From Macrostomum lignano (taxonomy: Eukaryota): a stretch of 64,000 nucleotides of DNA. Under the pieces are notes generated by a model that was given only the letters and a program-made list of their open reading frames with translations, ran no database searches and was not told where the DNA came from. The stretch covers positions 284,209 through 348,208 of the forward strand of contig NIVC01001310.1 of NCBI GenBank assembly GCA_002269645.1, read 5' to 3'. Positions 28,796 through 60,900 of the stretch are shown in pieces. Both the position numbers and the translations under genes were made by a program. Position 1 is the stretch's first letter, and every line of letters starts with the position of its first letter.

Positions 28796-28980
<185 letters not shown>

Positions 28981-32831: not shown

Positions 32832-35800
32832 TGATGTGGATGGACTCTTATTAGTATATCCATGTCTATGGCCCTGACCTCCACCGCCTACGTGCTAAGA
32901 GGCAGGGCGATTAAATATTGTTTTAAGCTCCTTGGCTCGCCACCAGAGCAGCCCAAATTACATTATACCAAAGCATATAACATGGCATCGCAAGCAGGCA
33001 CTGAAACCGTGGGCTAAAGCTTCTGGCAAAGAAACCACAAGATACCCCCAAAGCAGCAGCGCTCTACGTCGGCATCGCCTTCAAGGCAGAAGCCAGAAAA
33101 GTCGGAACGATCATCAGCAGCATCAGCAGCATCATCAGCAGCATACTCTTGAGGCATACTTCGATTCAGTTAGCATCCAGCACGAGGAATCAGACAGCAT
33201 CCACGTAACTCGGAAGAAAATGGCAGCTCGACGAGCTTGCATGTTGAACGCAGTTACATCTGCTACCTTCTCGAAGTATAAGAATCTACCTCTGACGGAT
33301 CAACAATTCAAGGACCCAGAGATTGTCATGAATTTCATCAGAGATCACGTACTCGGACAGGTTAATATCATCGTAGAGAGGAACAGGTTCTGGAAACGGC
33401 AACAAAATGACGGAGAAAATTTTAACGACTGTCATGCAATTGAGGGACCTGATGCGAACATGTAAGTTCTGTAAGCATTCCAACGACCTACTGAGGGATA
33501 AAATTGTGCTATGAGTACGAAATCCGGAGACAATCAAGCATCTATTAGCACAACCAGATCTCTCTCTCTCGCTGACGCGCTGACAATATGTAGATCAGAG
33601 GAAGCCTGTGAGATCCAAAAAATGAAATCTGCACAGCTTCACAGGTGTCCATAGTGCGCAAACACCGAGGAAAAACTCCAGGTGGGGCTCGATCAAAGAC
33701 TCCAGAAGCAAAGAAATGCACTGCCTGTGGTAAAGGGCGACATCAGCGCTCAGAATGTCCCGCCAAGGACAAGAAGTGCTTTAACTGCGGTCGCATTGGA
33801 CATTTTGGTTCCATGTGCCGGTCCAGTCGCAGCACTGGTCATCCGGATAAAAGGCGACCACCGAGAATCTCAACTTTGGTTTCTACACTGGAACCCGCAA
33901 CCCCAACAGTAGTAGTCTCGATAAATGGGGAGCAGCTGGAAATGATGCCCGATACGGGATCCAATATCGATCCAATCCGAGAATGCGATTGCAAAAAGCT
34001 CCGCATCCGTGTTGCACAACTAAGGCATGACGCCATATTTCCTAAATCAGCCAGTGGACAGTTCATTAAGAGTGACGGCAATTTCTCCGCCACAATAACG
34101 CTGAACGGGAAGCACGCAGCGACAAGGATTCATGTGCTGAAGAACTTGGTCGCGCCAGTGCTGTCCTGGCAGAGCTGTAGAAAACTGGGAATCATCCCTA
34201 AAGAGTTTCCAAGTCAGATAAACCAGATAACTCAGGTTCTGACGAATGACGGAAGAAAACATACAGAACTGGATTTGATCCAAGAATTCCCGAGGGTCTT
34301 CGACGGAGTAATTCGGCCGATGAAGGGCGAAAAATTTTCGATTGTGCTCAAAATAGGACGCGATCCCATTTTCCGTGAAGACGCCACGCCGGCTATCACT
34401 GCCACTGCATGAAAAACTTAAAAACGAACTCGATGCCTTGGAAAGACAGCAAATTATCTGCAAAATAACAGAGCCGACACCCTGGTGCGCTCCAATAGTC
34501 GTAGCCCCGAAGAAGGGCACTGACCGAATTCGTCTTTGCGTAGATTTTAGAGAGATAAACAAATACGTTCTGAGACCTCGATACTAATCACCAACACCAC
34601 TGGAAGTTGTGGCCAGCACCAATGTATCCAACGCAGAATGGTTTACAGTTGTTGATGCATTGAAAGGATCCCATCAAGTACCACTCCACGAAGACAGTAT
34701 GCCACTGACAACATTTATTACTCCTTATGGAACATACATGTTCAGAATGGCACCTTTCGGGATCAGCTCTATCTCAGAATATTACAACAGGAGACTGGAT
34801 AGTGTTCTACAGGGCTTGAAAGATACTCGCCACATTGTGGATGACTGCATAATCGCAAGCGCCGACTACGAAAGCCAAATCCAAGCTGTTCGCGAATTTA
34901 TTTATCGGTGTGACGAGAGTGGAATATCATTGAATAAGAAAAAATTTGTCTTCGCCAAGAAAATGTAAAGTTTGCTGGATTTATCCTTACACTAAAGTGC
35001 TATCAGGTGGACCCTGACATGACAGCAGCCATTGCTCAATTCCCTGAGCCATCAAATGTTACAGAATTACGCGCATTTATGGGCCAAGTGAATCAAATAG
35101 GACCATTCACAGATTCGATCGCAGAATGTACCTCGATATTAAGACCTCTACTGAGCGCGAAGAATTCATTCATCTGGAACGAGGAGCACCAAAAAGCCTT
35201 CGATAAGGCACGAATCCATCTGTCTAAAGTCCCATCATTCGCATACTACGATCACACGAAGCCAACCGCACTGCACACCGACGCATCAAGGTTGAAGGGA
35301 CTCGGATTTGTTCTCAAGCAGCAACAACCTGACGGCGCCTGGCGAATGATTCAGGCAGGATCACGGTTTCTGGCTGACGCGGAGACGCGATATGCTATGA
35401 TCGAGCTCGAGTTTCTAGCAATTGTGTGGGCTTCGCAAAAATGGACTCTCTTGTTTTTTAAGGACTCGATTCATTTCAAATCGTGACTGACCACAAGCCA
35501 CTTATTCCGATATTAAACGGCTACCAACTAGACCAAATCGAAAACCCGAGGTTGCAGCGCCTTCGTGCCAAGCTTAATCGCTACAACTATGAAGCAAAAT
35601 GGGTACGAGGTAAAGACAATGTATATGCCGATGCACTATCAAGAGCTCCGATTGCAAATGCAACTGAAGAAGATCAGATTGATGAGAATCAAGCTCTAAG
35701 TAGTGTGAATTTGTTGACTATGGTAATGGAAGATAGGGAAATTGACTTTAACATGAAGAGAATACAAGAACACGTAAAGAAGGACACAGAAATGCAAGAG

Positions 35801-37256
35801 CTTATCCAAGTAATAGAGAATGGATTCCCGAACGATAAAGCTAATCTTCCAGTTAATCTAAGACCGTACTGGCACATTAGACATAAGCTTGTCGTCTAAA
35901 ACGGAGTCGTTCTCAATGGATGCCGTTGTATCATCCCTAAAGAAATGCGAAAAGAAGTTTTGAGAACACTACATTCAAGTCACCAAGGTGCTACTAAGAC
36001 CAAAGCAAGAGCAAGAATGGTCGTCTATTGGCCCAGCATGGAACGTCAGATCGATGACACAATAAAGCAATGCAATGCATGCCAAGAAACCCGTCCAAGT
36101 CAGGTCAGAGAACCGATGTTGCCGAGAACTACACCAGCAAGGTGCTTCCAGGAAGTTCATGCTGACTTTTGTGAACACCGCGGCAGGCAATTCCTAATGA
36201 TAGTGGACGGATACTCTGGATGGATCAACATATGGAACTTCGGACAAAATGCTCCGGTTTACAAGCTGATTAACGCGTGCCGTGAGCTATTTTGTCAGAC
36301 AGCTGTACCGGAATTGTTCTGGTCAGACTCAGGTCCTCAGTTCGAGGCCAGCGCATTTGGTAACTTTTTGAAGAGATGGGAGTCGAGTCCAGATTCTCAT
36401 CCCCATACCACCACCAAAGCAACGGGAGAGCCGAAGCGGCAGTCAAGTCAGCCAAAAAGATCATCAGAGGATCGTGGGATTATCGCAACAATGACATAAA
36501 CAAGGACAAAATGGCGGAAGGAATACTTATCTATAGAAACACACCTATGTATGACGGACGCATTCCTTCTATTATGCTGTATGGACACCCAGCAAGAGAG
36601 ATTCACTCCTGCTCATCGAAGAAGCTTTAATCCCGAATGGTACAACACGATTAAACAAATGGAGGACACAGCATCAGAAGTTCACGAGGCTGTGGAGCAA
36701 ACAAGTCCAAGAGAAGCCTCGATGGAATCCGAATAGGGTCGACTGTAGTTCTTCAAGAGCCAACAACGAAACTGTGGCAACGGAGAGGAGTAGTGGTAGA
36801 GGTCGGAAAAACACCGCGACTACCTGGTAAAGTTGGCGAGCGGCAGAATACTACGGAGAAACCGCATTTACATACGGCCAACATTGCCACTGACCGCCGA
36901 CAACTGGAAAATGACAAAGACGACAAACGGCGAAAGTACAAGACGTACGGAGACGACTTGTACTACGACGGCCAATCAACCAAGCAAGGAGAAACCTCGA
37001 AGTAGCTCGAGAGCAACGAAGGGCATCCCGCCCGCCCGACTCCAGTACAGTAGGCTAGGACATCCAAAAGTTAATTTTGTCGAGTGATAAGGACACTGAA
37101 TTGAAAGGGGAGATGATGTGGATCGACTCTTATTAGTATATCCATGTCTATGGCCCTGACCTCCACCGCCTACGTGCTAAGAGGCAGGGCGATTAAATAT
37201 ATTGTTTTAAGCTCCTTGGCTCGCCACCAGAGCAGCCCAAATTACATTATATAACA
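32832..37256 (+). mobile_element. Full-length Ty3/Gypsy LTR retrotransposon, Mag-like; LTRs 32832-32982 and 37114-37256, 5-bp TSD ACGTC
   Basis: TG...CA LTRs of ~150 bp are near-identical. PBS TGGCATCGCAAGCAGG at 32983; PPT GAAAGGGGAGA at 37103-37113. ACGTC flanks both ends (32827-32831, 37257-37261) and is single at the empty site in copy 1. Gag has tandem knuckles CTACGKGRHQRSEC/CFNCGRIGHFGSMC, followed by PR (DTG), RT (VDD), RNase H (TDAS) and IN (HHCC, D-D-E) in Gypsy order, with several frameshifts and stops. Confidence 0.95.
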
Positions 37257-39567
37257 ACGTCCATGGAAAACTCTCTATTTCAGCCTGGATCATTGACTAC
37301 TCGAAAAGCGTACCCAATTATGTGTCGGACGAGGTGCAGCTTAGAAGAGGACGCGAGCTTCCGACTTTCACATTTGTGTTCCCTGTTGTTCAAAAGATTG
37401 TATTCGAAGAATATTTGCCAAAAATAGAGAACCTGGCGAAGTGGCTACTCGATAACGTGCAGTCTAAAGTTACTAAAACGCTTGAAAACCTGGCCGAAAA
37501 TTGTTTCAAAGCGTTTCCAAGGCTGCTGCTACTTGTGAAAGAAACTGTTGTCAAGGCGATCGAAGCCCAAGAGGCTGAGTGTCGGACAGATATGGCTAAG
37601 CTTATTGCACACGAGCGTCGCTTGTTCACTCAGGACAGCCAGTTTTCGGAAAAACTGAGATACGTTACTACACAATGGCAGGAGTTCCTAGCGACACATC
37701 GTACTCCTCAGTAAATAATTGCTTTGAATAGGCATGGTGCCTTCGGACCTGGAGCCCGTTGGTGCAGCAATGTAAAATTCAGTCCATCCTAATACAAGAT
37801 CCTTAACCATTTCTTGCAGGCGGCTGCCAGCACAAGCCGCCTCAAGCGACCCATCAAACGAGGAGCGAATTCGCCTGGGAACCAAAGCCTACCTGCTGCT
37901 GGCCTGTCAGCGCATCTCGGACACGGTGCCAATGTCGGTGCTGTGCCACATGCTCGACGGCGTGGCCACAAAGCTGGTTGCCGAGATAACCCGACTGTTT
38001 GCCGGCGGCAGCCACCAGGTGGACATCCTGGATCTGCTGCGAGAGAAGGAGGGCAGGCAGCGGAGGAGGCGCTACCTGACTCAGGCTGCTTGTCAGATGC
38101 GCGAGTCGCGGAAGGAGCTGCAGAGCGCCAAGCAGAACCGCATGCTGCTGGAGGACTGAGACAAGCGCCTCTATTTGAGATGAAAAATGGAAGACTGTTC
38201 ATGCGAACACGAATTTACCTAAATTTATTTTAACTATCTTTGAAGTGACCACAACTAATACGAGTATACCTTTGAACGGAGACTAACAAAAGTACTTTTG
38301 AATGGTAGCTACATGCCACCTCGACCCCGACTGAACAATTTGATACTTTAGAAATAACCCTGACGACCCCAACTACAAGCGTATCTCGGAACTCTTGAAC
38401 TCTGGTGGAACGGAAAACTTTATTAGAAATGTCTCAAAAATACCCGAAAATGTTTATCAACTACTTACAGTACTCCTATTCATCTGCTTGTATCCATTTA
38501 TAACCAGTTTTTAACCAAGTCTTGTAAGCTTTGACGAAGTTTACAAGCAGCATCAATTTTTTCCTGTTTTGTCACAGCCTCAGTTTTAATTAGTATTGCA
38601 TAAATTCCATTTCGCAAAAAATTTGGTAAGTAGTCGTAATAAATGACCCTACAAGCATGATCGGAATCTTTTTAGTCATAAATGTTTAATTAAAATTCGC
38701 ACTTGAGCACATTCTCTTCTCTTTCCTACTTAAAGTAGCCGCTTATAGAAGATAATGAAATTAATTATCGCTAAAACAAAATCTGATCAATTTTAAATTA
38801 TTAATAAATACACTTACTTCAGTTTTGCGATAGTTGCGCATATGTCCCGAGGATCCCGAAATTATGGTATGAAAAGCTATTGTTATCATTAGTTATTTCC
38901 CTCAAAATTTAGGGCTAGTTTTTTATTCAAGCTACGAACGCCAACTGGAAGCAAGCAAGTACAAAGTACAAAAATAGACGCTAGGCTAGACATGAATTGC
39001 TTTATTGTCACGGCAATTCTACGGTTTTTCCATGGATTTTCCGACACAAAGTTCCCTTTTCTGCCGACAACTGAGTGCATTGCAACAATATTGGCATGTT
39101 GTACTAAGGTATATCAAAATTCAGGTATGCGCTCGTAATTTTTGCTTGCGACAATTTTGGACAGTCTTCGATAAGTAACGCATAAAAAAGACAGGCTTAG
39201 ATACACAAGAATTCAACTGCAATTGATAGTTGGTGTATTTACAAATTTTACAGATCCTATGATGAAGCATAAAAAGCAGCTGCGCTTGTATGGGGCCAAT
39301 TGTTAAATGTCTTTAACAAAACTTTTTTTCTGAATAAATATCGCATTATAAAAAAATGAAATTTACAATAAATTACGGAATTAAAAACATCCGAATCGAA
39401 ATGCATCTGTACACATGATCGTTTTGCTCGGTGGAGCAGCATGACGAACCATAAATACATTCATGGCTACTATTAGACATGGATTCGCATTGATATCTAG
39501 AAAAAATATCTACAATGAATATTCGTGCTTTCTGTCTTTGTTTCGTAGCTGATAGTTCAGCGCCTAG

Positions 39568-40341
39568 TCAATAGCAGCATTCCCTCGGCTCGGACACTTG
39601 CCGCAGCGTCCGCTTCATCCGGTCCATATCGGCCATGGTCTTCTCGCCGAACCGGTAGATTCGCTTTTTGCTGCGCTTCCCAGTGTCCAGGTAGTCGAAA
39701 TAGCCTTTGGACTTCTCCCTGCGAACTCTGTGGGGAAGAATGGTTGTTGTTCATCTATTCATGCTTCATTCTTCTCATTAGCAGCAAAGCCAGAAGTTCG
39801 GTTCATTACCTCATCGCTCTGGCAAACGTGTCGTAGGTAGCTTTCTTGTTGCCCTTGATTTTTTTCCACAACAGTCCCATGGTCTCCGTGTCGAGCGTTT
39901 TAAAATGGCGACATTCGCCAGACGTCTCGCGTCCGTTCTCGTCGCAGAAGGCGAGAATCCGTCGAAGATCCTTTGTCTTGTCGCCGTATGTCGAATTAAG
40001 CAGAATGGTGAGGATGACCTCGTGCACTTTAAGCTTCGAAGACATTTCTTCCGGCTTGCAGTTGCTGCTTCTTTCTGCAATAAGTTGAAAAAAAGGAATT
40101 AATGAGTCTACTCGTAAATTCCCTTGCATGTCTTTTGAAATACCATGAAGCTCAAAATAGCTTGCGCACCAATGACTTCCTTGATGTAGTCCACCATTTC
40201 GTCAATCTCTGCCTCGCGAGCTGAAGAAAACTGCTGGAGCGATTCGCAGCTCTCGAAGCCGCTGCTCACAGTCGTTGGACTTGGCGGTTCATCTAGCAGT
40301 TGTTGCCTTTGGGAATTCTCCTTGAGTAGAACTTGCCGCTG

Positions 40342-40378
<37 letters not shown>

Positions 40379-40794
40379 GGCTCAAACATGGGAACGTTCG
40401 GCAGGTTGGTAGCACTCCCACGACCAGTTCCATCAGCGTCCTCCATCAGCTCGTCAAGAAGCTCCTTAGTCTCCTTGTCACAAGAAACTCCTAGTCCACT
40501 AGTATATTGTCGCTCTCCAAGCGCCTCGCACTGTTCACGCGCAACCGAGCTGCTCAGCTGAACATTTTCATCACCTTGCAGTTGGCTTTTGTCTACACGT
40601 TCCTGCAGAAAATCTAGCAGCCAGCTGTTATCAATCTCAGGTACACATAGTTGCTGCTCAGGCCCTTGGAACACGAAGCTTTGCCATCTGAAACTGTCCT
40701 CATGGTTCGGTAGAACGCCAGCCGGCAGTTCGCTGAGATCGATTTCCATAATATCGAAGTCAAACGCGTTGATCTCTGTAGTTTTTTGGCTCAT
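39568..40794 (-). CDS. Divergent ETS-domain transcription factor A (349 aa); exons 40794-40170, 40074-39810, 39727-39568
   Basis: An acidic, polyQ-containing N-terminus precedes LKVHEVILTILL...GLLWKKIKGNKKATYDTFARAMR|VRREKSKGYFDYLDTGKRSKKRIYRFG, matching the ETS pattern LW..K....Y....RA.R...R..Y.F. Phases are consistent (1050 nt). Confidence 0.8.
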
Positions 40795-40977
40795 TTTGGA
40801 GGCTTTTATTCAGAGATGGAATTATTATTAAAGCCTGAAGCGAGTCTGCCCCTCTCTTCGGCTGCTCACTGCCCGCTTTTATAAATGTTCCTTTTAGTTT
40901 GTACCTTGTTGGTAAGTGTACACTTACTTGTACAGTGTAGCGTCTGGGTATGCATGGCCGAGATTCTGGCTAGTCCA

Positions 40978-40993
40978 CGGGAATTCCGGGGAA
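40978..40993. promoter_or_regulatory. kB-like/STAT(N4)-like composite element upstream of ETS-like A
   Basis: CGGGAATTCCGGGGAA. A TATA-like TATAAAA lies on the - strand at ~40877-40883. Confidence 0.4.
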
Positions 40994-42535
40994 GATACGG
41001 CTCGTACTTGGTCTTGCCATTTTGTCTATAGCTCCGAGTAGAGTGTTTACCTATTATTAAAATTAATCTATGAGTGAATAAGAATACTTTCAAAAAATTT
41101 GTCCGTAAATTCTAATCACGAAAACTAAAAATGGTCACAAACAGTAAGATTAATTCATGCTTTTGCACTATTTCTTTGGACCACAGCTATATTTACATGT
41201 AATTCTTAATTTTAATCGTTGACTCTTATGTAGGCATAGACCAAAAACATGCAGAAGCCAGTTTGTTCAGAAAAAACACTGCCTTTGAATAACGTCTTCC
41301 TGTTTTCGAAGTCTTGTGCCAAAGTTCTCTGAGCTATCTACTAGTTAAAAGTCACGTGAAAATAACAACAAGTATTAATGCACAGTATGTATTTCAGAGC
41401 AAGAGATGAGATATGGCTGCCACCAGTGAAGCAAATATTGTTTTGAACTGAGTGGTCATGTCTATTAATACAATTTGTTATGAGGCTATTTTGACTGAGA
41501 GTGGTTATTGTTAGATAGCTTTTTGTGCTATTGTGCTAGCTTTTTGATAGATTTTTTCGAGACGTAGCCATTGTACTATAACAATGAGCTCAGAGTCGAC
41601 TGGAGTACAAGCTATTCGCACTCCAGGGGATGCAGAGAGGACGCTTTTCAGCGGGTGAAAGAAAATGGTGTGTAAATTTATTTCGAAGACTGTACTTTGA
41701 GGCAAACCCCATCCATTCCTAGGTGTGTGCATTTAGCTCCCTCAGTGTCCGCCTACTAGCTAAAAATATCTACTTACGACACTACCGGTACCGATACAAC
41801 ATCTCTCCAACCAATCGTGTCATTACAGTATTCACCGATGAAGCATGTACGATAACACTAAATAGCTACAAAGTGTAGCCAAAAAGCTTTGTAAATTCCT
41901 ACATAATTTGTTTCTTACCAATCGATGGTGTACCATCTAATCGGAATGATTGTGGATGAGACAAGGAGATGCTGAGAAACATTCTTGTTGAATATCTTAG
42001 CATGAAGAAGGTAGCTATTGTCAAGACGATGCTTAATTACTGCGAGTGCATGATCGAGGATGGTTTTGCAGGTTCTAAGGATTTAGATTTTAAGACCAAT
42101 TGAAGCCATCAAGGATAGGGTGACATGGGTTGCTACTAAGGCATATCCCGAAGGTGGAGTTGGAATATTTTGCATTTGGTATTGAGGTGATCCATTTAAC
42201 GCAGCGGCAATTAGTTTCAAAACTGAAGTTGACTGACTTTATGTTTTTTTTGGTCAAGCCAAATGGGGGCGCACTGTTTTTATTTTCGACAATTAATTGA
42301 AATACAAATTGATTTTTGCATATACTCTGTTTCGTAATTCAAGCATCAAACGGTTTTCTATAAACGTTTTAAGATTTCATTAAAAGCGAAAGTAAACAGT
42401 ACATGATTATGTGTACAAATACATGTAGAAACAATATAATTAGTTCAACTTATCACTTGAACAATCAGATTTAACCGAAATTGCGACTGGATAAAGTTTA
42501 GAACTGTAGCATACTATATTTTATAAAATCATAAT

Positions 42536-44446
42536 TCAGTCATCAGTCATCGACAGAAGCATCCTTAGTTCATTAACCAGCCGCAGTCCATTGCAACCAA
42601 AGCGAATCACTCTGCTGCTGGCATACTTAGTCGCTGAATGGCTTTCCACGACGCCAAAGTCACCGCTAGAAGATGACTTTGCTTTGGCCAATCTACAGAA
42701 ATATGTGTCGATGCATTACATTTATATGCAGAACTTGCAATTTATTGTATCAAAGGTTTCTTTACAGTGTCATTTTTCCTTGAGCTTTCTAAGGACTTAA
42801 GATCTCTGTGTTTTGAGTCCATAAAAACTTTAGGGCTTAAATATATATTTTTTAATGTCAACATATTGACACTCAAGTACTCCGACACCGACACAACCGA
42901 CACCGACACACCCGACACACCAGACACAAACATACCCGACACAAGCACACCCGACACAAAAACACCCGACACAAACACACCCGACATCTGAAACCAACAC
43001 ACCCGATACAGACACAACCGACACCGCACATCCGACACTGACACACCCGACACCGACACACCCGACACCAACACGCCCGACGCAAACACACCCGAAACCG
43101 ACACACCCGACACCGACACACACGAAACCGACATACTCGGACACCGAAACACTCCAACAACACACTCCGACAACAAAAATCCGACACCAACACACTCCGA
43201 CACATCGACAATTAGCTCACCTAATTGCCCTCGTGAATGCGGAGCAGGCATTCTTGCTCACTGGTCTTCTATTGACCTTCTGCCAGAGCATCCCAGCGGT
43301 TTCTCTATCGAGAATTTTGAAGTACTCAATAGAACCGCTCCGTTCTTGACCGTTGACGTCGCAGAACACTAGGATTCGACAAAAGCATTTACGACTACTC
43401 AGCAGCACAATTAGTATGAAGTGCAAAACGTTCGGACGATTTAGCGCCGCAAAGCCGAATAGCTTTCCCGAAACAAGTTCGATTACGAGTAGAATAAGTA
43501 CTTTTATCAACGAATCAAGGACGTCATGCTGAATTTAATCAATAAAACTTTACCCACCCATTTTCTCTCTAATGTGCGTCGCCAAACGATCCAGAGTTTC
43601 TTCTCGAGCTGTCATCGTGTAACCCGGTGGCTGGTCATCGGTGGCAATGCTCACAGATTCCCAGGTCGAGGTAGCCGGTTGGTTTACTGCCGATCGGCCG
43701 CAACTTTGGATGATTGGTAGATTTGGAAGGCTGGGCAGCTGGTCGACGGCAGTTTGACAGGTGACTGGTTGCTGCACTGTGGTAACACTGATAGGGAATG
43801 CTTGAACACCGCAGTTAAACTGTTGCACTGTGGTAACACTGATAGGGAATGCTTGAACACCGCAGTTAAACTGTTGCACTGTGGTAACACTGATAGGGAA
43901 TGCTTGAACACCGCAGTTAAACTGTTGCACTGTGGTAACACTGATAGGAATGCTTGAACACCGCAGTTAAACTGTTGCACTGTGGTAACACTGATAGGGA
44001 ATGCTTGAACACCGCAGTTAAACTGTTGCACTGTGGTAACACTGATAGGGAATGCTTGAACACCGCAGTTAAACTGTTGCACTGTGGTAACACTGATAGG
44101 AATGCTTGAACACCGCAGTTAAACTGTTGCACTGTGGTAACACTGATAGGGAATGCTTGAACACCGCAGTTAAACTGTTGCACTGTGGTAACACTGATAG
44201 GGAATGCTGAACACCGCAGTTAAACTGTTGCACTGTGGTAACACTGATAGGGAATGCTTGAACACCGCAGTTAAACTGTTGCACTGTGGTAACACTGATA
44301 GGGAATGCTTGAACACCGCAGTTAAACTGTTGCACTGTGGTAACACTGATAGGGAATGCTTGAACACCGCAGTTAAACTGTTGCACTGTGGTAACACTGA
44401 TAGGGAATGCTTGAACACCGCAGTTAAACGGTACTATTGTCTGTTC
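42536..44446 (-). CDS. Divergent ETS-domain factor B (5' end and one acceptor unresolved; repeat exon frameshifted as assembled)
   Basis: Exon 44446-43558 carries 17-aa repeats then REETLDRLATHIREKM. The ETS exon ends at 43221 (GMLWQKVNRRPVSKNACSAFTRAIR). The last exon 42692-42536 contains SRVIRFG. Intron positions match A, C and D. Confidence 0.65.
42880..43205. repeat. Degenerate (ACACCG/ACACCC)n low-complexity tract in an ETS-B intron
   Basis: Imperfect GACACC/ACACCC repeats. The V/C/S/G-rich and T/D/P-rich ORFs here are artefacts. Confidence 0.85.
43772..44428 (-). repeat. 51-bp minisatellite (~13 copies) encoding VQQFNCGVQAFPISVTT
   Basis: Unit GCAGTTAAACTGTTGCACTGTGGTAACACTGATAGGGAATGCTTGAACACC. 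Three units are 50 nt (deletions at ~43947, ~44099, ~44208). Confidence 0.95.
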
Positions 44447-47414
44447 CTGTTTAAATAAAATCCTGTTAACTCGTATCCAAACGTTATTTTTTACTTCTAC
44501 GAGCGTATATAGCTAGTCGAGATTTTTTTGTTACTTAAGAAGATTTAAAAAGAAATGTGTGCGCAGAGGGAAGCCAAAAGCCAAAATGGGGCTCCTCCTG
44601 TACAAACTAAAGTAACTAAATTAAACGAAAGTGGTAACCATGCTCGAGGAATGACGGGAGCTCAACTTTTGCCACCTTTTGAGACGTGGCATCCAACGGC
44701 CTAAGAGACAGGAGTGGAAACGCCAACTAAGAGACAGAGGCGCTAACAAAGAGACAGGGCAGCCGACCAAGAGATAGGGGGGGGGGGCACCCAACAAAAG
44801 ACAGGGGCGCCAAAAAAGAAAATGGCGACAAGAGACAGCGCCAAAGAAACAAAGGGCAACAAGATACACGCCCACCAAGAGACAGGGCGCTAACCAATAG
44901 ACTGGGATGCTAACAGAGACAAGTCGCAAAAAAGAAAATGCCCACCGCAGGGGCCCAGCAAGAGACGGCGCCAAACAGAGACAGGCGCAAACAAGTAGCA
45001 GGGGCGCCAAACGAAGGCAGGACGTAACAAGGTGCATCTTACAGGATTGCGGCCCATTCAATTCAAATTCCTGCGTACACCACCGCTAGAAAATTCCGGC
45101 CTCTACGAGAAACCCAATTAAAGGTCGTCATAGCGACGAAAGAAACTGAAAGAACTTCATAGTTAAACTTTGAAAATCGCCTAAAGTGGTCAATTTCTTG
45201 ATCATCCTCGTCAAAATTTTGAGATGGGCAGTCTGCAGCAGCTGGAAATGTTTTTGGTTGTTAAAATCCCAGTAAACCGTGCAGGCAGCATTTTTTACTT
45301 TCAACAAACACGCCATACAAGTGCACTGAATTAACGATAATTCCATGGCTACGCCGGGGTTATAATACATGTATAGTGTACATTTATTCTAACTAGATTT
45401 TTAAAATCCAATTCTACTAAAAGTAGTTAGCAATGACAGCCGGAAAATAATTGATGAGTGAAATGTCAACTAAAAAACAAGGTTTTATTTTTAGCTAGTG
45501 ACGAATTTTGACTCCGCGATTTAGCGCCACCCACGCGAATAAACTACCAGATACGCATCTGTTTATCAGTTAAAGTACTTAACCTGGCCTGTAGGCTAGT
45601 TTGAAAACAGGCACAAATCTTTACAAAAACACACAATTATTACTTTGCTTCTATTGGACACGGCTCTATTGGGCCATATCTGCCTATCTAATTTATAGCA
45701 CTAACTTGGAACTAAAATACAAAATTGCATGTGAATCTTTCAAATTCACTCATCAATAGATTCATCATGCGGTAGTCCATGCAACATTCTGACGTTTGCC
45801 GACATACTTGATGTCACGCCGTCATTACGCCGAAGGATAACGATGTTATACGACGGCCGAACGTCGGTAGATGTAATGCGAATGTGCCCCTTTGTCAGCG
45901 ACATTCATAGAAGTCGAAAACGTTGGCTCAAGTAGTCGATGTCGGATTGCTGTACAATGAGTGTCTGGGGGTGGTTACAACTGCCTCTAAAATATCTTAT
46001 TACTATTACAAATAAGTAATACAAACAAGTTTGAAGTTCCATTTTGCATGTCGACAAAATCATTATTGCATGTCAAAACGCGATAAAATCCCCTATTAAA
46101 CATGAACCTGCAGCGCTACATCACTTACATGCACTGTGTATAATCCCACAGTACTGAAACACTTGCCAAATACGAGTTCAAAAAACTGAAGTTCCACTTC
46201 GATTGTACTAATTCTGCGTCAGATTTAAACGCAGAGTACAGTGTAGCCAGGCGTACAGACAGGACTGTACAGGCAGGCAATGTGCAGACAGGCAATATAT
46301 GTACAGGCTGGTCGGGAATCTCACCCAGCGGGGGGCCGGGGGGTTTGGGGTGGGTGTGCAGTTGAATGATCTAAGTTTATTCCGCGGTGCGGCCGAGGCG
46401 CGGCCCCCGGTCTGCCGCGGAAAAGCCAGGGGACATTGTAACACTCTGGCCTGAGGGGCTGCTGCGAATCTATTGTGCAAAAATATGCATTCGAAATCAA
46501 CCTCTAAAAGATGCTTGTTGCAGTTTGCCTGCCGCACTAAATAGGCAAGCCCCCCCCCCCCGAGACTCTAAAAAGTCTATTGCGGCTTGCTTTCCTGTGT
46601 GCTATAGTTGCATTTCATAAACAGAAATTTGGTTGGCAGTCTACCCGCAGCTCAGATAAGATAGCAAGTGCAGTGCTTTGGCCCTATTCATGCCAATTCA
46701 TGGGGCAGGATAAGTTAAAGAGTACTCTTCTTATCTTAGCCTTATATTATTTTTCCAGTCTCATCCTGGTAAAAAAAACACAGCTTGAAAAGTTCAATTT
46801 GCAAAGGAAATAACATCGTTAAGAGTATATAGAGTTATATTTTGCAGATACCAATATCAATGTCATTCGAATTATGAAACTTTTGATAAAACCCTAGAGG
46901 AGTTTTATCGCTTTAAATGCCAGAAAGATACAATAACGAGGTTATTTTTAATAGACAATCGATTTAGGCATCGATATTTTTGGAATATAACGATACCTAG
47001 CCTATGACAATATCAACAGTTCATAAGTAAAAGGTAAAAGTAGGTAAGAAAATTGAATTACAGAAATTATGCATGCATAGAAAGTGCTGTGCACTCAAAT
47101 ACAGCTAACTGTACAAAAGCATGAAGTAGCTACTGAAGATAAACAGAGCATGTAGATGTGCTGTTGTTGAAAGCCATGACCATGAAACAAGATAAATTGA
47201 GAATAAACAGATTATTAGTACATCCACTACGGACATTAAGGCTAAAGCCAGTGCTAAATATTCAATGACGCAGTGAAAAAAAGTTAAATTTTTGTGTCAG
47301 TTCAAGTTGCGAACGTTTCACAAATAAGCCTATTCAATGCAGTATACACGCTTCATGGTGGTGTGTTCGATAGATTTGTACAGAACGCACAGTAGAAGTT
47401 TAGAAGCGGATAAA

Positions 47415-48865
47415 TCAGTAGCTGAAGCTCTGAGGCCGAGACACTTGTCGCAGAGTGCGCTTGAATCGCGTCATCTCCTCCATCGACCGTTCGCCAAATC
47501 GGTAAATTCGCTTCTTCTTTCCTTTGCCAGCGTTCAGGTACTCGAAGAAACCTTCTGTTCTTTCTCGCCGGACCCTGTCGAATGTATTTTATGTACGAAA
47601 TTAATTTAAAACATCAAACAGGTGTTAAAGTAACTTTGGAATTTCAGTACTCACCGCATTGCCCTAGCAAAAGTGTCATAGTTTCCCTTCTTGTTTCCCT
47701 TAATCTTCTGCCACAGAAGTCCCATTGTCTCCGTGTCGAGGGTCTTGAAGTGTCGAGCTTCGGAAGTCACTTCGCGACCATTTTCGTCACAGAAGGTGAG
47801 AATCCGCTGCAGGTCTCTAGACTTGTCGCCGTAGGATGAATTCAGCAGGATAACTAGAATCACCTCGTGCACTTTCAGCTTTGATGACATGTCGTCTGGT
47901 TTGCTTCCACGCTTTTCTGCAGGATTTAAGGTGGTTAAATACGAGTATAAGCTATATCAACTGAGATTGTTTGAGTACGTCTGGTTCAGGCAACTACCCA
48001 ACACATACCAATCACTTCGCGAACATAGGCGGCCATGCGCTGAATCTCCTGCTCGCGGTCAAGCGAAACCGATGTGCTGCCGATCGTTGACTCGCCGTCC
48101 TCAGAGCCGAACGTGAATCGGGTGTCGACACTTTCAGCCGGGCTGATCAAATCGAAGGCTGGCGTATCTACCACCGGCTTTACTGTCGACGGCTCGCACT
48201 GCGGCAGGCTGTCTGTAGACACATCGGCAGGCTGCGATAGTCTAATTTCAGCTTGGGTCTGCTTCCCGTTTTCGAAGCCTTTACCCAACTCGGATGAACT
48301 GTTGTCACCTTTGTAGAATTGACCCATCAGATTAATTGTAGGAATGGGCTTCTCAAAAGACTGATCGCTTTGTTTTTGCGTCCGGATTAGTGTCACAGTG
48401 ACTGGCGGTGCCGGATTCTTAGTAGGCTGTAACAGGAAAGCCACCAATTGATGCGTTTAAGCAACTGACTCATTTTAGATTAGCAGTTTTTTAAACTAAC
48501 TACTGAGCTAAGGACTCATTTTTTGTTCTTACGTGAACTTGCGGCAGGTCTGGAACTGCGCTAACGGTCACGGACACGTCTGAGGCGCTGTACTCGTTCA
48601 GCAAATCAGCCAGAATTGTCTCGTCGCTGCTGACGCTGGACTCCATTGTCTGAGGCACAACGTTGGACATCTCCGCGAGTAGAACTACGCTCGGATCCTC
48701 AGCATAGGTCTGAGGCGCTGTTGAAGCTATGCTAGGACCAGGAAGGACCTCTTGTCCAAGGTCCAGCTGCTCTGGCACGCTTGTCACATTGAGATTCGGA
48801 TCAGTGATCGACAATTCATCGACTTCCATGAATTCGAAATCTTGAAGCCTAGTCTCAGGGTCCAT
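47415..48865 (-). CDS. Divergent ETS-domain transcription factor C (390 aa); exons 48865-48533, 48426-48009, 47916-47655, 47574-47415
   Basis: Close paralog of A: MSSKLKVHEVILVILLNSSYGDKSRDLQRILTFCDENG...LLWQKIKGNKKGNYDTFARAMR|VRRERTEGFFEYLNAGKGKKKRIYRFGERS. Phases are consistent (1173 nt). Confidence 0.8.
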
Positions 48866-49124
48866 AACTGTTGTTTGCTAGTTTTTTCTGTGTTTATGAT
48901 TTGTATATTTGGATTTGTAGCAGAGACTCTGCTTCTAGTGCTAATTTTGAAGCAGACGGGCGGCATGCTGCGAGGCTTTTTCTAAGAAATCGTCTGAGCA
49001 ACAACCCCTCTACCTCAGCAGCAACCCCATGCCTTCTACTGTACAATAAGTGTACAAGTCTGGACATGGAACTGAAGGAGAGAATTGAAGTTCCCTTCTG
49101 CGATCTATTTTTAGCACAGGAGCT

Positions 49125-49140
49125 TTCCGCGGAATTCCCG
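49125..49140. promoter_or_regulatory. kB-like/STAT(N4)-like composite element upstream of ETS-like C
   Basis: TTCCGCGGAATTCCCG; its reverse complement CGGGAATTCCGCGGAA is 15/16 identical to 40978-40993. A GAS motif TTCTAAGAA also lies at 48980-48988. Confidence 0.4.
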
Positions 49141-51121
49141 AGGACAAGCCAGTGTTTGCAGACAGACGGACGGAAAAGTCTCATTTGATTACTTTCAATA
49201 GTAAAATAGGAAAGCTAGAGAATTTTGTGATGAATTTAACAAGAATGAAACAAACATTCGAAACTTTCTATACACTTTTTTATTATGATTTTCAGATTCG
49301 TACGTACATAAAATCCTCAATAGCTTTCCTTTCAATCGTATGGGGGCAAATAGGTTCGAAAAAAAGTACGAAATCATGGGCTTCTGAGTTATTGAGACAG
49401 ATGTCACTCAATGTACCGTGATTTCCTTGATCGGAGGTCAAGCCAGGGGCCCAGAGTTTGTGTTTCATTCTGATTTTTTGGCACAGAATACCAGATAACG
49501 ATAATGGTCGAACATTTTCCGTAAATTTAATAAATGCAAACTACCTTTTTTGTTAAGAGCTTTCAGAAGTGCAACGATCGAAAAGCATTGGCGGTGCTGC
49601 TAGCAGCCATTGTCAAGCCCGCCTGTTTTGACAGTCGTTCGGACGCGGCTATTCGTCTCCGGAGTGTTCAAGGCGGATCCCAGGGGTGCTGAACAGACTG
49701 GGCAACGGTCTGGTGACCTATCGAGGGTCTCGGCTGAAATGGGCGCAAAGCTCACACGTGCCCCTAGCCCGTCTTTTCCTAGGAGTCTACAGGAAGTCAA
49801 GTCAGGATGGCCACCTCGGCTGCTGAGGCTTTTGAAGCAACGGCGCAACATGTGGCCGACGCCAAAGTTTCTTCACGTGGCAACATTTGCGTCAATTACA
49901 TCCTGGGACTGACTATAAAAAGGCCAAGATCCAGCTGCAAAAGTGTGGGGCGCGATTGACTCCATCTGGACTGACTGTTTTGTGGGAGAGTGTACTCGTA
50001 TCTACATCAGCAATGAGTCCTGCAGTTTCTCCAGCAGTTTCAGACGATTAGTGTTCCTTTTCTGAGCCGCCCGTACTGCTCTTATTTTTCATTGATTTAT
50101 TAGCTTGTGCTTGAAGAGGCCGCAGACTGAAAAGATCATAAGACTGAGCAGGTAAAAACTCAAAACGAATTAGTCTAACCTACGCTCTGCTACGAGTACA
50201 ATCTCACCGAAATGGATGTGAGCGAATAATTGGGTTCGGAAAAAAGGTTTCTGCACACGCCAAACCAGTTTTTCTGAGTCTAAAATACAAGCTAAAAATG
50301 CAGTTGTGTTTTCTATGGACTTGGCAAAAATTTGCATTTTTGCACAGCGCAAAATGGCATTACGCAGTAGACAATCTTTTAATTCTTTAGAAAATGTTCT
50401 TAAAATTTTGTGTTTAGTTTTGCAACACTGTTTCCGTTTGCAACCACAAAACCATCCCGAATTCTTGGAATTGAAGTCACTACTTGCGATTGCTAAAATA
50501 TTGAAAACTTCTTATCGCGTTTATGCAGTTTTCTTTTGGCCAATGACCCAAATATCTTTTTTTGATATCTACCCTCGTATAATTAGCTCGCAAGTCGCAA
50601 AGTAGTGAGTTAGATGAAATTTCAAGGTAAACAATTTGCTGCTTGCGTTGCGATGTGGCAATAAAATGTTACCGTGTCTAAAAGAAGAAAAGGGCAGAAT
50701 AATGCAAACATAAATGGCTCGAGTTTATACTGTTTTTTCATTGAAGTTAAGAATAGTAGTACCGTATGACTAATTTAGCAAAGTGCTAGAGTTATTGCTG
50801 CCGCCCCATTTTTCAGTTTATAGTGTATAGTTATCGATCCATACTTGGCTCTGGACAGTCTTGGCCGGAGCTATGTACACTCAATTTAGTGAACAGGGTG
50901 GGTATGTGCGCCTTACCCAGCACTCCAGGACCAGGAAAGTACTTATCAAGCAGCGAGGAGAGGAGAGAGAGAGAGCGAAATCTCTCACCCTCAACCACCC
51001 CTCCAACCTCATCCAAGGCCAGACTATCTCTCCACAAAACCCCGTGACTGTGGTACTGTAAACAGGGCAGTTGAAACCGAAAGAAACGCTTTCTCCAACT
51101 CTGTCAAAGCAAGCAGAAGAC

Positions 51122-54100
51122 ATGTCTGACATGGACAGTGTCGAATTCATGGAAGTTGACGGTCAGGAGTAAGTAAAAAGCTTTTAAATTCTTATTTAAT
51201 TTTTTACAGTACTCTTTCACTGACTTTTATTCTACCGATATGATCTAATACTTTTGTCTTTATTCGATTTATTCAATGATTTAAAGCAAATTTGAAGTCT
51301 CATTAGTTTACTTTACTTAGTTTACTTAGTTTACTTTGCCATATAAGATGCTGGTTTTGATTTAAATATTGCTTACAGAGTATGTTAAACTTCGTTCTTA
51401 TTCAATCAATACACCCACAATTTAAAAACCATCTTTCAGCCTTCAGGAGCAAGGTCTGTCCTTGCCAGATTTGGACATATTGAAGCCATCTGAAGATGTT
51501 CGTGGCCGACTTCCAGGCTGGAATATCCCAGCTACTACGACGTTTTCAGCGTCGCCAGGGAAAATATCGCTTTTTCCTCAAAAGCAGGCCGTTGTCGAGG
51601 AGTGTGAGAAGATCCTGCTACCGCCAGGCCCTAGTGAATCGCGGAGGCAGCAGACGAACGAGCCAGTCTGCCCGCAGGAGTTCTGTCCTGAGGAGCTTGA
51701 TGACCTGGCTATGGGTGCTGACAGCGCCGCCCCAGGCCTGGAAGGATTTGACTATCTTCTGGACGAAGAAGACGTGAACGTCTTGCCAGTCCTATCGGCG
51801 GCTGACGTCGAAGCAGCATTACCAGGCGCTATTCTGGGCGATGCAGAGTCAGAGGATGTGTTCGCCCCTAGCGTGCCGTCCCTACAGCCTGCAGGTACAG
51901 AAATATATCTGTCACCTCTGAATCGGCGCGAGCGTCGACCGACTATCACTCTGATGCTCACAGCGAAAGAGGAGTCGCTCGGCTGCCCCTCAACTGGGGA
52001 AATTGAGCAGGACATTTATCATGAGTTGATGGATGACAGCTGCGGGATTTCCAGTGATGTGGCTTGTGAGCACAGCTTCTCACCTGCTCCGTAAGTGGAA
52101 TTTTGAGTGCTAAGTTTATACTTTTAAAAACTTGGAATGAGCCAAGAAAGTCAATTTTAGATTAACAATACAAGTTTGAAGAAAAGGTTGAGCCGTTTTT
52201 TCTGAAATCTATCTCACACATACATACAGACAACTCATTTTTAGTATATAGGAAATTGTCCATAAAACTGACAGGTCACCATCGATTGGAGAAAGCCAAG
52301 CGTATTGTGACACGGCCAAATATATTCTCGATCTGCATCGGGAGCTCTCCCGGGGTGAGAAGACTATCTCTTCGTTTTCGTTCTGATGACTATAAACCAT
52401 AAATAGCTTAACAATGATGCTATATCTGACTTTTTCGACCCGCACTCTAAACAGACGTGCCGCTGTCGAAGAAGAAGCCGATGCTTCACGAATTCCTCGG
52501 CTACATTCTACACAGGGGAGCCGAGGACTCGAAGCTATCCACGTTAAGAACTGCCATTTTCTTCTGCGAAGAAGATGGCAAGCGCGCAGACCCGGGGCAA
52601 CCGCGGCAGTATTTTCGCGTCGCAGACTTTTCGGCCGTCTCTGAGGTCTGGAAGAGAATAAAGTGCAATTCTTCCAGCGACTGCACAAAGAATATGAAAA
52701 GAGCGATGCGGTGAGTTTCAAAAGCTTGGAGGCCGAATAATGGGGGTGGGGTACAAATGTGCTGGCTGCAGTTTGTCATTGTCTCTCAAGTCCTAACCCA
52801 CTGTCACCATCACGGTCCACTAACTAGAGAGCATCTACCGACTAAAGTAGGTAAAAATATAAAGAATAAGACCTCAAATAGGTCTTGTAAAGAAACCCGC
52901 CATCTTTAAAAAGATGCAGACTCTCTATTGTAAACATTTTTGGGCAAGATTTGAATGCAGTGTGCTTCACTGGCGAAAAACGAAATAAAAAAACGGCATT
53001 TAGTCTTGGCAACGCGCACTGAGAAAAAGAGAGGGTAGGGGGGTGAGACAGAAAGAGATAGCACTGTACGTACTGGAGTCGCTTCAAGGGTTGAGGTGGT
53101 CGTCGTTTCCCGCGGGACGGCCAGTGGAGGGGGTTGTCGTATTTCCAAGAAATTTTCTGCCACTGCACTTTTATCGCGACTGTCATGCCAGCGAGTGTGT
53201 TTACGCTTTTTGATTTCATTGCAATGGCAAAGCTGCTAGCAAAATGCAGAGGGGTTTGGCCAACGGAAAGAGCCTAGCTGCCTTACTATAAACCATGAGC
53301 TATTTCATTGCATTTGCATTCGCTTTGCGACTCATGCCCAATAGTCGCTGACAATACAAGGCAGGTTTATTTGACTAGTGTTCTGCTTGTGCTAACGATA
53401 AAAAATATTGTATATGCTTATCGATTGCTCTTGCTATTTACCAAGTACAGCTTTAGGTAGAAAAACGGGAAACTTTGTTTCTTAGAAAGCTTTGTAAACT
53501 CCATGGATGACTTGGCTTTACGTGAAAATTAAAACTGCCAAGATAGGACGATAGCTTATTTTGGTATCGCTATTGACGATCTAAATAGGAATTCGGACAA
53601 TCGGAACGGGACTCCATAGAGATTTAAGCCATGGCCACAGGTCACACCCTAGTCATGGACTTAGCAGTTTAGCAAAGTCTACTTAGGGAGGCTTGGCCAT
53701 AGACTATAACTTTAGACATTCAAAATATGAGAAAAGCCATTCATACAAGGGTTGTGTATCCCAAGCAGCCCGAGTCTGTGGCCTGGCTTGAATGTCTATG
53801 GCGTCCCGTTTTGATTGTCCGAATTCCCATTTAGATCGTCAAAAAACGATAGCAGATAGCGCAGTTATTTTTGCGCTTAAAAATGAAGTATTCGTCTCTG
53901 GGTTGTGTATTTCTTGCTCAAAGTCTCGTCTTCTCTTCAAAGACTTTTTAAGTTTCCGACTCAACTCATTCATGGATGTAAATGTGATTCACTTTCGTAA
54001 CACGATGCATTTTCAAATGAATTTATTTTGCAGAATGTCGACGACCAACGATCGGCATTACTTTATTAATCTGTCTCAGAAATTGCACCGAATGCAGGTG

Positions 54101-54163
54101 TTCCGCTTCGGCGAACGAAGCCTGGAACACTTCAAGAAGGTGTTCCCAACCGCCTACCAGTGA
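51122..54163 (+). CDS. Divergent ETS-domain transcription factor D (387 aa); exons 51122-51168, 51440-52090, 52275-52354, 52455-52710, 54034-54163
   Basis: An acidic N-terminus (EFMEVD, as in C) precedes MLHEFLGYILH...FFCEEDG...SEVWKRIKCNSSSDCTKNMKRAMR|MSTTNDRHYFINLSQKLHRMQVFRFGERS. All five exons join in phase (1164 nt). It is head-to-head with C. Confidence 0.75.
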
Positions 54164-57940: not shown

Positions 57941-60900
57941 ATGGCGACGGCCATCCACCATGACAGACGTGACGCCGGCTACGCCTGGGTCGTGCTGAGC
58001 GCCTCACTGCTAGTCCAGTTCCTGGTTATGGGCCTCACCCTCTCGATCGGAGTTCTGTACGTGGAGTGGCAGGATTACTTTAACAAGGACTCGCTCGTAT
58101 CCTGGATCGCTTCAATGAGCAACAGTTTGGTATTTATATTTGGTGAGTTTTTTAGCAAGCTTTTTACTTACCTTTTAATTGTCTGTTCAACTAATGATAG
58201 TAGCTTGGCGTATCATTTTAAAAATTGACTGCCACTTGTTGATGCTTCCGATTATACAATGCAGTACAATAAGTTCTTTCCTTGATAGTCGGTCGTTATC
58301 ATTTTTATTAGTAGCTTTTTTGGAGCGATCCGATTTTAGTCCTTGGAATCGGGGCCATGCGAGCTCGTATCTAATAAGTCCAGTGCTTCGATGATTTGGA
58401 GATTTTCTCTCCGAAGTTTTCAACGGGAAGTTTTTTCCCGTAGCAACGTTTCCCCACCAAGATTCTCCCGCCAGTTTCGGCGACCTTCTAGCGCTCCCCT
58501 GAATCCACGTTGCGCGAATCTCAGGCAAAAAAATTTGTGCGGAACAAAGTCTCATGCGACTGCTCAAACTGGATCAAATCGGATCATTCGACCAGGGGAT
58601 TCAGTCAGATGGCTCGATAACTTACTCGACCAGTTTAATGCAATCGTTACTCTCTGAGTAAGGGGTGTTAGACGCGCCGGAGGGTGCCGCTGTACATATC
58701 GCTGTACTTTGGCGGGGGTTGAGGTGTGGGGTGTTGGCCGCGCCGGCCAGCTTAAAGCCTCTGCACCCGGCCCGGCTTGGCTCCGCCGCCATTTCTCAAT
58801 TTTTTTATCTCTTTTTTACGAACCAATAAATATTAACTCGTTTAAACTAATAAATAAATGCCTCGCTTGATCCACTGGGATCTGTTTTCTCGGCCGCTGC
58901 CTGCTTTTCGCAACTGACTTTGTCTCGTTTGGCTCCTTCCGGCGTGTTTAATCAATACCTTGATCAGGCCACTCGATCAGTTTACCAAAACGTTGATCAG
59001 GTGACTCCATTAATCAATCAGATAAAGCGACAGAAAATTGTTTAAAATATATCACAATGCATTCATATCGAGTCAACAATCTTTTTATAGCATCAATTTC
59101 GATATAAATCCTTTCATAGCAGCTGAAATTTATTGTGACTAATATAGAAGAGCAGAAATAGCAATCTTAAGAAAAAATTTTCTCACGCCAATTCAGGGCC
59201 CCTGTCAACATTTTTGGCATCAATGTTTGGCTGCCGAGTTGTAATCTTTGCCGGAAGCCTAATCTCAACTACCGGAATGATTATTAGCTTTTTCTGCACG
59301 CAGACCTATCAGCTGATTCTGTCCTACGGAGTGCTTGTTGGTGAGCATAAGGGTGCTCGTGGGCACTATTTCCACTAGCCATTTCCTAAGTTAAATATCA
59401 GACCAAGACACATCCTTCTTTGCAGGTATTGGCAGCAGTCTAATGTACATCCCTGCCGTAACAGTGGTACCAGACTGGTTCTCCAAGTACAAGAATATGG
59501 CAGCCGGCATCTCAGTAATTGGGGCCAGCGTCGGCAGCATCTGCTACCCGCCACTGCTCACCGCAGTTATTGCTGAGTACACTTGGCGCGGTAGCATGCT
59601 CATCCTGGCTGGCATGCACCTACAAGTGGCTTTTCTGGCCATTCTGCTGAGAAGCGGCGACTTTGCAGACGACGACTACGACGACAGTGGCACAGCTGAC
59701 GACGAGGGCATCAATGGTAGCGTTGTTGAAGAACCGGCGATGGACAACTCAGCGGCCACGCTACGAACCATCTCGGCTACTAGTCTGGCGATGACTCCGG
59801 CGACTGTGGCGCCGAGACGTCGCAAGCGAAGCATCTGGGCTAAGCGCCGGCGCTCGATTCGCGGCATGACTCTCATTCAGTTCCAGTCGTCTGCGGTTGG
59901 CGCCAATCGTCGACGAGGAACGGCGTCCATCGGCCTGACGCCCAGCCAGATCGAACGATTGCGACGGATGATGCGCGAGAATGCCGGCTTTCAAGATGAT
60001 GAAGAGAACCAGATCGAGGAGGGAAGCGAGCAGGAGGCGGCTACGTCACCTCGGGCCGATTCGGCAATGAAGTATAAAAATTTGTGAGCCATTTTTGCAA
60101 TATAGTTTATTTTTTATTTAAGTATTACTGAGTACGCCCTGGAGAGGCAGCTGGATGCTGCGCATGCGGCCATGCTGCGTGCTGCTTCTGGAGCTCGCAG
60201 CGGCCCTGGCATCGAGACGAATGCCGCGCTCTACGAGAAGGCAAGCCTGACGCGGCCTTCTGACCTGCTGCGCGCGCGGTGACTCCAACTGGCTGGCCAC
60301 GTCATCTGGTCGAACGTCGCTGCCGCAAGCCGCTGCATGACGTTCTGTTGCGTCAGACCGCGTAGGCGATGCGGAAGGGCGAAATTTCTCATATTGTTGA
60401 AGACAATACAAGGTCTGCCAGCCAGACAAACAGAATCGATGCCACACGGCATAAGTCCTCGAATTTTCTTTGATAATTTCATTCGCGTGTAATTTCAGCG
60501 CAGACAATCGCGAATCGGTGCGAGAGCAACAACCGACAGAGAGGACAGACAGCAGGTCGCAGAATGATGTGGCGGCCTCTATCGCTGCAAGCGACGAGGA
60601 AGAAGATGAGAAATCGGCACCAAGCTGCCAGTGCGTCGGAGTCGAATTACTGAAGCATCCCAGCTTCTACGCCTTCCTATTGGCCGACATGCTTTGGAAC
60701 ATCGGCATGTTCATGATGTACAGCGTCGGACCAGACTTCGCCGTGTCTGTCGGCGTCAGTAAGACGAACGCAGCTTTACTAGTGACCATGGCGAGCGCCT
60801 GCGGTACAGCCGGTCAGCTGCTGATAGGCCCTATTGATGCCTGCTGGCACCCGAACACCCTGCTTCTGTTCGCCATCAGCATCTTTGGCACTGCGCCCTT

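Follow-up and report, generated by a model that had tools for sequence, protein, structure and literature searches.

A 64,000-nucleotide stretch of Macrostomum lignano contig NIVC01001310.1 (hereafter 'the window'; coordinates are window positions unless another sequence is named) contains a cluster of four genes, g1 to g4, predicted to encode highly divergent paralogs with an ETS-type DNA-binding domain. The cluster extends from 39568, the final base of the g1 stop codon, to 54163, the final base of the g4 stop codon, and g4 is the only one of the four genes on the plus strand, the other three being on the minus strand (Table 1). Comparison with the deposited contig gave 100% identity over 20.9 kb. 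All introns in the four gene models, as obtained by scripted splicing, have GT-AG boundaries. The spliced translation of g1 is identical to the NCBI protein BOX15_Mlig007295g1 (P0003), that of g3 is 100% identical to BOX15_Mlig028334g1 (P0001), and the g4 model has the same length (387 residues) as the annotated gene; g4 is the most divergent of the annotated copies.

Searching the whole 64-kb window by tblastn with each of the four domains recovered only the g1–g4 loci. Compared with g1, the ETS exons of g3, g2, and g4 align at 83%, 44% (E 2e-12), and 33% (E 1.7e-6) identity, respectively, a likeness that, judged from these alignments, lies well past chance level. A candidate fifth copy at 16538-16645, indicated by a tblastn match to ETS1 (E 0.015), was rejected, as the four family domains find no match there and the sole open reading frame covering the interval has no ETS-domain signature by eye. 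The g3 and g4 genes are arranged head-to-head with their start codons 2.26 kb apart, and the interval between them (48865-51122) may be a shared bidirectional regulatory region.

Near the N-terminus, the motif F-x-[FI]-M-E-[VI]-D is kept in g1, g3, and g4 (at 40758, 48838, and 51140, respectively); outside this motif, their N-terminal regions are nearly unalignable. A second kept, helix-like motif, (A/D)RE.EI..M..YI.EVI, lies directly before the ETS exon. In g1, the N-terminal region is fast-evolving and acidic/Q-rich, and the divergent ETS domain is C-terminal. A Pfam scan of the full-length proteins found no Pfam domain in the N-terminal regions and no SAM_PNT match. The proteins appear to share a design in which the N-terminal motif is followed by a long, fast-evolving, acidic Ser/Pro/Gln-rich region—presumably a regulatory or activation region—and then by the helix-like RE.EI..M..YI.EVI motif and a putative C-terminal ETS-type winged helix-turn-helix of ~125 residues.

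The original prediction held that the four domains keep the two DNA-contacting arginines and the Leu/Val-Trp pair of helix 2 and replace other hallmark residues of the ETS domain, and the spliced models agree with it. The arginines are present as ARAMR in g1 and g3, TRAIR in g2, and KRAMR in g4, and the helix-2 pair as LLW, MLW, and EVW. The Trp of the canonical LWQF is replaced by His (Leu/His in g2), the strand-1 Trp is replaced by Phe (AFCD, VFCD, TFCD, and FFCE), and in place of the YYY that follows helix 3 there are segments led by Val, Leu, or Met (RVRRE, RLAKA, and RMSTT vs canonical RYYY; the segment after the second arginine is VRRE in g1 and g3 and MSTT in g4). The longer loop that had been described between strands 1 and 2 corresponds to a 7–8-residue insertion relative to canonical ETS domains (hhalign alignment and g3 and g4 models). 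An intron was also said to split the codon of the second arginine, and it does so in all four genes; it is a GT-AG intron in phase 2, after codon base two, and divides the four codons as AG-A, AG-A, CG-G, and CG-A. An additional intron, in phase 1 and just 5' of the domain, is common to g1, g3, g4, and apparently also g2. The second-arginine intron recurs in the family members P0008, P0028, and P0017, the last of which is Pfam-positive; it is not universal to ETS genes, because the ETS domain of an SPDEF-like gene of the bivalve Solemya velum is intron-less.

Three positions (L14, F47, and W59) do not vary among 15 aligned family members, and five others (H7, K63, N65, R75, and R78) reach at least 90% conservation; in one family member, P0025, both helix-3 arginines are gone. 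As defined here, family members combine the helix-1 pattern H-x-[VF]-x-L with W-x-x-[IV]-K-G-N, a ...Y-[RK]-[FL]-G element, R-A-[MI]-R with a basic stretch devoid of Tyr after it, and an intron that interrupts the second arginine codon in phase 2. All of these features are found in g1, g3, and g4, and g2 shows neither K-G-N nor the conserved Tyr of NYDTF. The classical ETS signature (helix-1 Trp, strand-1 Trp, and Tyr after helix 3) is absent; the helix-2 Trp is kept.

The assignment of these domains to ETS, also part of the original prediction, is borne out by profile–profile comparison, predicted fold, and the helix-3 arginines, but not by the Pfam threshold or the three classical signature residues. 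In hhalign, a profile of 15 family domains (A2) matches a canonical ETS profile (A3) at 98.3% (E 2e-14) over columns 2–87 of 90; a narrower profile of five sequences (A1), comprising the four window domains and the paralog P0004, matches it at 96.9% (E 1.8e-10). As modelled by AlphaFold2, the domains of g3 and g4 (predicted local distance difference test scores of 83.8 and 90.0, respectively) have the topology a1-b1-b2-a2-a3-b3-b4 plus an extra C-terminal helix. The top 50 Foldseek matches of both models in the PDB are all ETS domains (target-normalised template-modelling scores of 0.45–0.83, with the best matches at 0.7–0.83), and the g3 model matches mouse ELF3 (3jtg) best. Among Pfam families, Ets is the only one with E < 0.01 for the window proteins, and phmmer against the PDB listed ELF1, ELF2, ELF3, ELK1, EHF, ELK4, and ETV4 at E 0.02–1. 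The family shares only ~20% identity with any canonical ETS domain. Taken from sequence profiles and models, the four domains are homologous to ETS domains and are predicted to have the ETS fold.

Several points weigh against this assignment, or against DNA binding of the familiar kind. The Pfam Ets model (PF00178) is the best or only match for g1, g3, and g4, but at 23.8, 23.2, and 16.7 bits, respectively, all three fall below the gathering score of 26.9 bits, and g2 has no Pfam match at all. When single sequences are compared with canonical ETS in hhalign, g2 reaches 6% and g4 29%; because each alone is barely recognisable, their assignment depends on their paralogs. The canonical profile A3 consists of 12 human ETS domains entered by hand, and the AlphaFold2 models were built on the 15-sequence alignment. 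Among the residues lost are the Trp of helix 1, that of strand 1, and a Tyr present in every sequence of the canonical set, so that DNA binding could be weakened or altered beyond the flanks. Finally, a literature search with the Mlig gene identifiers found no expression, localisation, or binding data.

The extent of the family was assessed by an exhaustive HMMER scan of profile A1 against 1.84 billion representative proteins (E <= 1e-3), which gave 23 matches. All named family members among these belong to M. lignano, and the remaining members come from RNA-seq assemblies (Logan runs SRR28338164/5, SRR30276804, and DRR639055); the end of the list is formed by canonical ETS proteins, led by the 'ETS homologous factor-like' proteins of bivalves, which are likewise without YYY. 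One RNA-seq transcript, P0005, is 86% identical to g3 in protein and 74.6% identical in DNA, and owing to this DNA identity, we assign it to a related but different species. A word-indexed protein search returned three matches to the 15-sequence alignment, and P0020 retrieved only itself; neither result extended the taxonomic range seen in the exhaustive scan. Within M. lignano, the family forms ~10 clusters at 50% identity. Scores against Pfam Ets are graded, from P0017 (57 bits) and P0018 (50 bits) through P0014 (27 bits) to g1 and g3 (21–24 bits) and g4 (14–17 bits), with P0026, from an RNA-seq assembly, inside the same range at 49 bits and no match for P0010, P0025, or g2. The high-scoring members bridge canonical ETS domains and the window genes. 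The M. lignano proteins P0017 and P0018 (BOX15_Mlig006668) and the transcripts P0020 and P0026 fall in the same divergent clade as the window genes and share with them the IKGN motif and a basic, Tyr-less segment after helix 3 (and, in the case of P0017, the second-arginine intron), but they differ in a retained strand-1 Trp, the absence of the hairpin insertion, and Pfam Ets scores of 49–57 bits.

In a neighbour-joining tree with 200 bootstraps—a rough tree, given the short domain and saturated distances—the family is monophyletic (82%), long-branched, and outside every canonical ETS class. Within the family, g1 groups with g3 (73%), g2 falls in a clade with g1, g3, P0004, and P0008-10 (79%), and g4 pairs with P0011 (100%). 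The tree and the scan together uphold the proposal of a lineage-specific subfamily, which, in the sequences searched, has been seen so far only in the genus Macrostomum. Several members already carry the automatic UniProt name 'ETS domain-containing protein'. Members P0006, P0007, P0011, and P0025 bear UniRef names such as 'Transposase', 'DDE_Tnp_1_7', 'PIPK', or 'THAP-type domain-containing'; these names probably stem from fused models of an older assembly, and Pfam scans of two of these members, P0011 and P0025, found no transposase-, THAP-, or PIPK-type domains in either. Among the non-members, the Solemya velum SPDEF-like P0015 has three 100% identical copies of its ETS exon ~7.5 kb apart, which may be a genuine tandem triplication or else an artefact of assembly; the threefold exon inflated the score of P0015 in the exhaustive scan.

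The cluster is an old one. Between g1 and g3, synonymous sites are saturated (proportion of synonymous differences, pS, 0.78), and the proportion of nonsynonymous differences (pN) is 0.15 in the domain and 0.53 in the N-terminal region. Between g3 and the spliced transcript P0005, the ratio of nonsynonymous to synonymous substitution rates (dN/dS) in the domain is 0.045, with dS ~1.8. The ETS domain is, by these estimates, under strong purifying selection. The genome of M. lignano has undergone a recent duplication, and the presence of the locus on a second contig, NIVC01001050.1, fits this history: on that contig, the coding sequence of g3 is unchanged and that of g4 carries a single synonymous substitution, while identity in the surrounding DNA is 98.8%. 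The ETS exons are 99.6–100% identical between the assembly copies. The length of g1 varies among assembly copies (349 vs 358 residues, with a third variant of 346), and the region of g1 outside the domain is evolving very fast. Exon 1 of g1 (40170-40794) aligns with the second assembly copy (L002, 17861-18510) at 87% identity with many indels.

The nearest paralog of g4, P0011, lies outside the window, and three further family loci that were fetched are all solitary. Because of the saturation, the constraint, and the solitary loci, we regard the cluster as an old, maintained set drawn from two subfamilies, with no recent burst. The earlier suggestion of an unusual tandem expansion with strong divergence is therefore upheld in part only: there are indeed four divergent neighbours, but they arose by ancient duplication, g4 is a member of another subfamily, and the fetched loci stand alone. 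Tandem ETS genes are, moreover, common across animals (PMC2789578).

The g2 copy is more degenerate than its neighbours, is unannotated, and has a damaged 5' end. Its three exons are open and its splice sites intact in both assembly copies. The two contigs differ at 19 of 648 nucleotides of g2 (pN/pS 0.55) and have no g2 start codon in common, and neither a strict nor a relaxed motif search found an N-terminal FxFMEVD exon (on the second contig, there is an assembly gap just upstream). In or upstream of its 5' part, g2 has a 51-bp tandem array that includes frame-breaking 50-bp copies and contains no ATG; on the second contig, the unit is present in a single copy (L002, ~15040-15090), and the array has expanded recently and in a copy-specific manner. 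On this sequence evidence, g2 may be a pseudogene or a fast-evolving gene.

Four explanations other than that of a separate, maintained ETS branch have to be weighed. One of these, that the proteins belong to another winged-helix family and resemble ETS by convergence, could draw on the Pfam scores under the gathering threshold; we regard it as exceedingly improbable, given that neither Pfam, nor the PDB sequence search, nor the Foldseek top 50 yielded any other winged-helix family, that the hhalign match covers the full domain, and that a graded chain of paralogs leads up to clear ETS domains. The genes might instead be ordinary orthologues that have evolved fast within some known ETS class, with ESE (ELF3, EHF, and ELF5) as the most plausible candidate, without constituting a subfamily of their own. 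There are real likenesses to this class: the R-A-M-R recognition helix; the ...(Y/F)(K/R)FG(K/E)... tail after strand 4, including the ESE-like FG(E/K) feature; the ELF3 structure as best match of the g3 model, together with a PDB sequence alignment with ELF3 that reaches the ...YKFGKNS tail; and, as top canonical scorers in the exhaustive scan, the bivalve 'ETS homologous factor-like' proteins (SRAMRFCRTAGYF...KKLCFRFGEKA), which are likewise devoid of YYY (RFCR..GYF...FRFGEKA) and include Ruditapes philippinarum XP_060569976. The flatworm proteins, however, have no PNT domain and no YYY, have His for the helix-1 Trp and Phe for the strand-1 Trp, carry the hairpin insertion, and have only ~20% identity; the neighbour-joining tree places them outside the clade of ELF3, EHF, and the bivalve EHF-like proteins; and the family has ~10 distinct clusters at the 50% identity level in one species. 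Membership of the ESE class is not supported, and we consider orthology to any known class quite unlikely.

The two other explanations concern function. An ETS fold could have been kept and GGA-directed binding lost, the domain now serving as a protein-interaction module or recognising another nucleic-acid target. The disappearance of the near-universal helix-1 Trp, strand-1 Trp, and Tyr pair after helix 3, the newly acquired hairpin insertion and family-specific IKGN motif, and the existence of a member without either arginine (P0025) are all in its favour. Family-wide, however, conservation of the two arginines and of the helix-2 Trp is at least 90% or complete, and the domain is under strong purifying selection. 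The SPI class (PU.1/SPI1, SPIB, and SPIC) provides a precedent: it is another divergent ETS branch that lacks the helix-1 Trp (LYQF) and YYY (RNYGK), is represented in A3 by SPI1, and still binds GGAA, with the first residue after the second arginine setting the +4/+5 preference (PMC2905244). The parallel has limits, as SPI keeps the strand-1 Trp, passes Pfam easily, is vertebrate-centred, and is unrelated to the flatworm family in the neighbour-joining tree. On balance, a loss of GGA-directed binding seems unlikely to us. That the copies are non-functional relics has arguments for g2 only—it is unannotated, has no shared start codon and no N-terminal motif exon, bears a frame-breaking array in its 5' part, shows a pN/pS of 0.55 from 19 differences, and has lost the conserved K, N, and Y—and even there it is countered by exons that are still open and splice sites that are intact in both assembly copies. 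For g1, g3, and g4, the models are intact; g3 and g4 show, respectively, no change and one synonymous change between assembly copies; and the dN/dS of g3 relative to the spliced transcript of another species is 0.045. As an account of the cluster, decay is very improbable.

We therefore consider it likely that the four paralogs form an old cluster and belong to a highly derived branch of the ETS family restricted to Macrostomum; three of them look functional and one, g2, is probably decaying. By analogy with characterised ETS domains, these proteins would be nuclear, sequence-specific DNA-binding transcription factors in which helix 3 would read the GGA core through its two arginines; the absolute conservation of these arginines underlies the invariant GGA in all ETS profiles (PMC2905244). 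In the known classes, the residue after the second arginine (Tyr, His, Asn, or Gln) sets the +4 preference (PMC2905244). Here, that residue is Val, Leu, or Met, and the next one, a Tyr invariant in the 12 A3 sequences, is replaced by Arg, Ala, or Ser. Because of these two replacements, a +4/flank preference outside classes I–IV is plausible, and the +4 and flank preference probably differs from those of the four known ETS classes. The altered flank specificity of the original prediction is thus a reasonable expectation (PMC2905244). A bolder proposal, which we put forward tentatively and hold to be possible rather than probable, is that the FC(D/E)-type proteins—g1–g4 and their relatives—constitute a genus-restricted fifth specificity class that keeps the GGA core via the arginines; a new +4/flank preference, or new partners, would then come from the Val/Leu/Met-Arg-Arg segment, the enlarged b1-b2 hairpin, and the additional C-terminal helix.

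The surroundings of the cluster contain genes of other kinds as well as repeats (Table 1). A dynamin-family GTPase gene (Dynamin_N and Dynamin_M) occurs twice with near-identical exons, the second copy being broken by a long terminal repeat (LTR) retroelement, and exons of a major-facilitator-superfamily transporter follow downstream. Tandem arrays are located in the first 29 kb of the window, and one lies inside the last intron of g2.

Table 1. Coordinates of the clustered genes, of other features of the window, and of the repeated Solemya velum exon.
Feature	Position	Strand	Details
g1	39568-40794: exons 40794-40170, 40074-39810, 39727-39568	minus	3 exons, 349 residues
g2	42536-43930: ~43768-43558 (upstream open reading frame piece), 43500-43221 (ETS exon, TRAIR), 42692-42536 (last exon)	minus	unannotated at NCBI
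g3	47415-48865: exons 48865-48533, 48426-48009, 47916-47655, 47574-47415	minus	4 exons, 390 residues
g4	51122-54163: exons 51122-51168, 51440-52090, 52275-52354, 52455-52710, 54034-54163	plus	5 exons, 387 residues
51-bp (17-codon) tandem array	43773-44429		12.9 copies; in or upstream of g2 5' part
CA-rich 15-bp array	42882-43203		inside g2 last intron
Dynamin-family GTPase gene, two copies	24517-26558 and 31335-37714	plus	near-identical exons
LTR-retroelement, zf-CCHC gag	33645-34412		in second dynamin copy
LTR-retroelement, RNase H	35007-35486		in second dynamin copy
LTR-retroelement, integrase	35945-36499		in second dynamin copy
Major-facilitator-superfamily transporter exons	59443-61956	plus	Pfam MFS_1; downstream of cluster
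Tandem array	605-1341		48 bp x15
Tandem array	4613-5424		(TATC)n, ~800 bp
Tandem array	5406-6787		273 bp x5
Tandem array	28796-28979		(CAGA)46
P0015 ETS exon copies (Solemya velum)	L010 4923-5225, 12438-12740, 19942-20244		100% identical

We found no published literature on these genes. The finding is incremental in the sense that automatic annotation already says 'ETS-domain' and that lineage-specific subfamilies of transcription factors are common. ETS domains are nevertheless among the most conserved DNA-binding domains of animals, and a handful of contact residues explains their four known specificity classes. Because the family is constrained, has replaced both Trp residues and the Tyr residues, and has kept the arginines, it offers a natural test of which residues an ETS domain truly requires for its fold and its specificity. 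Macrostomum lignano is a transgenic model for regeneration and germline biology in which knockdown is feasible, and the cluster would add lineage-restricted transcription factors to its repertoire. If the proteins do form a fifth specificity class, they would illustrate how much divergence an ETS domain can tolerate, including the loss of both Trp residues and of the Tyr pair, without ceasing to function.

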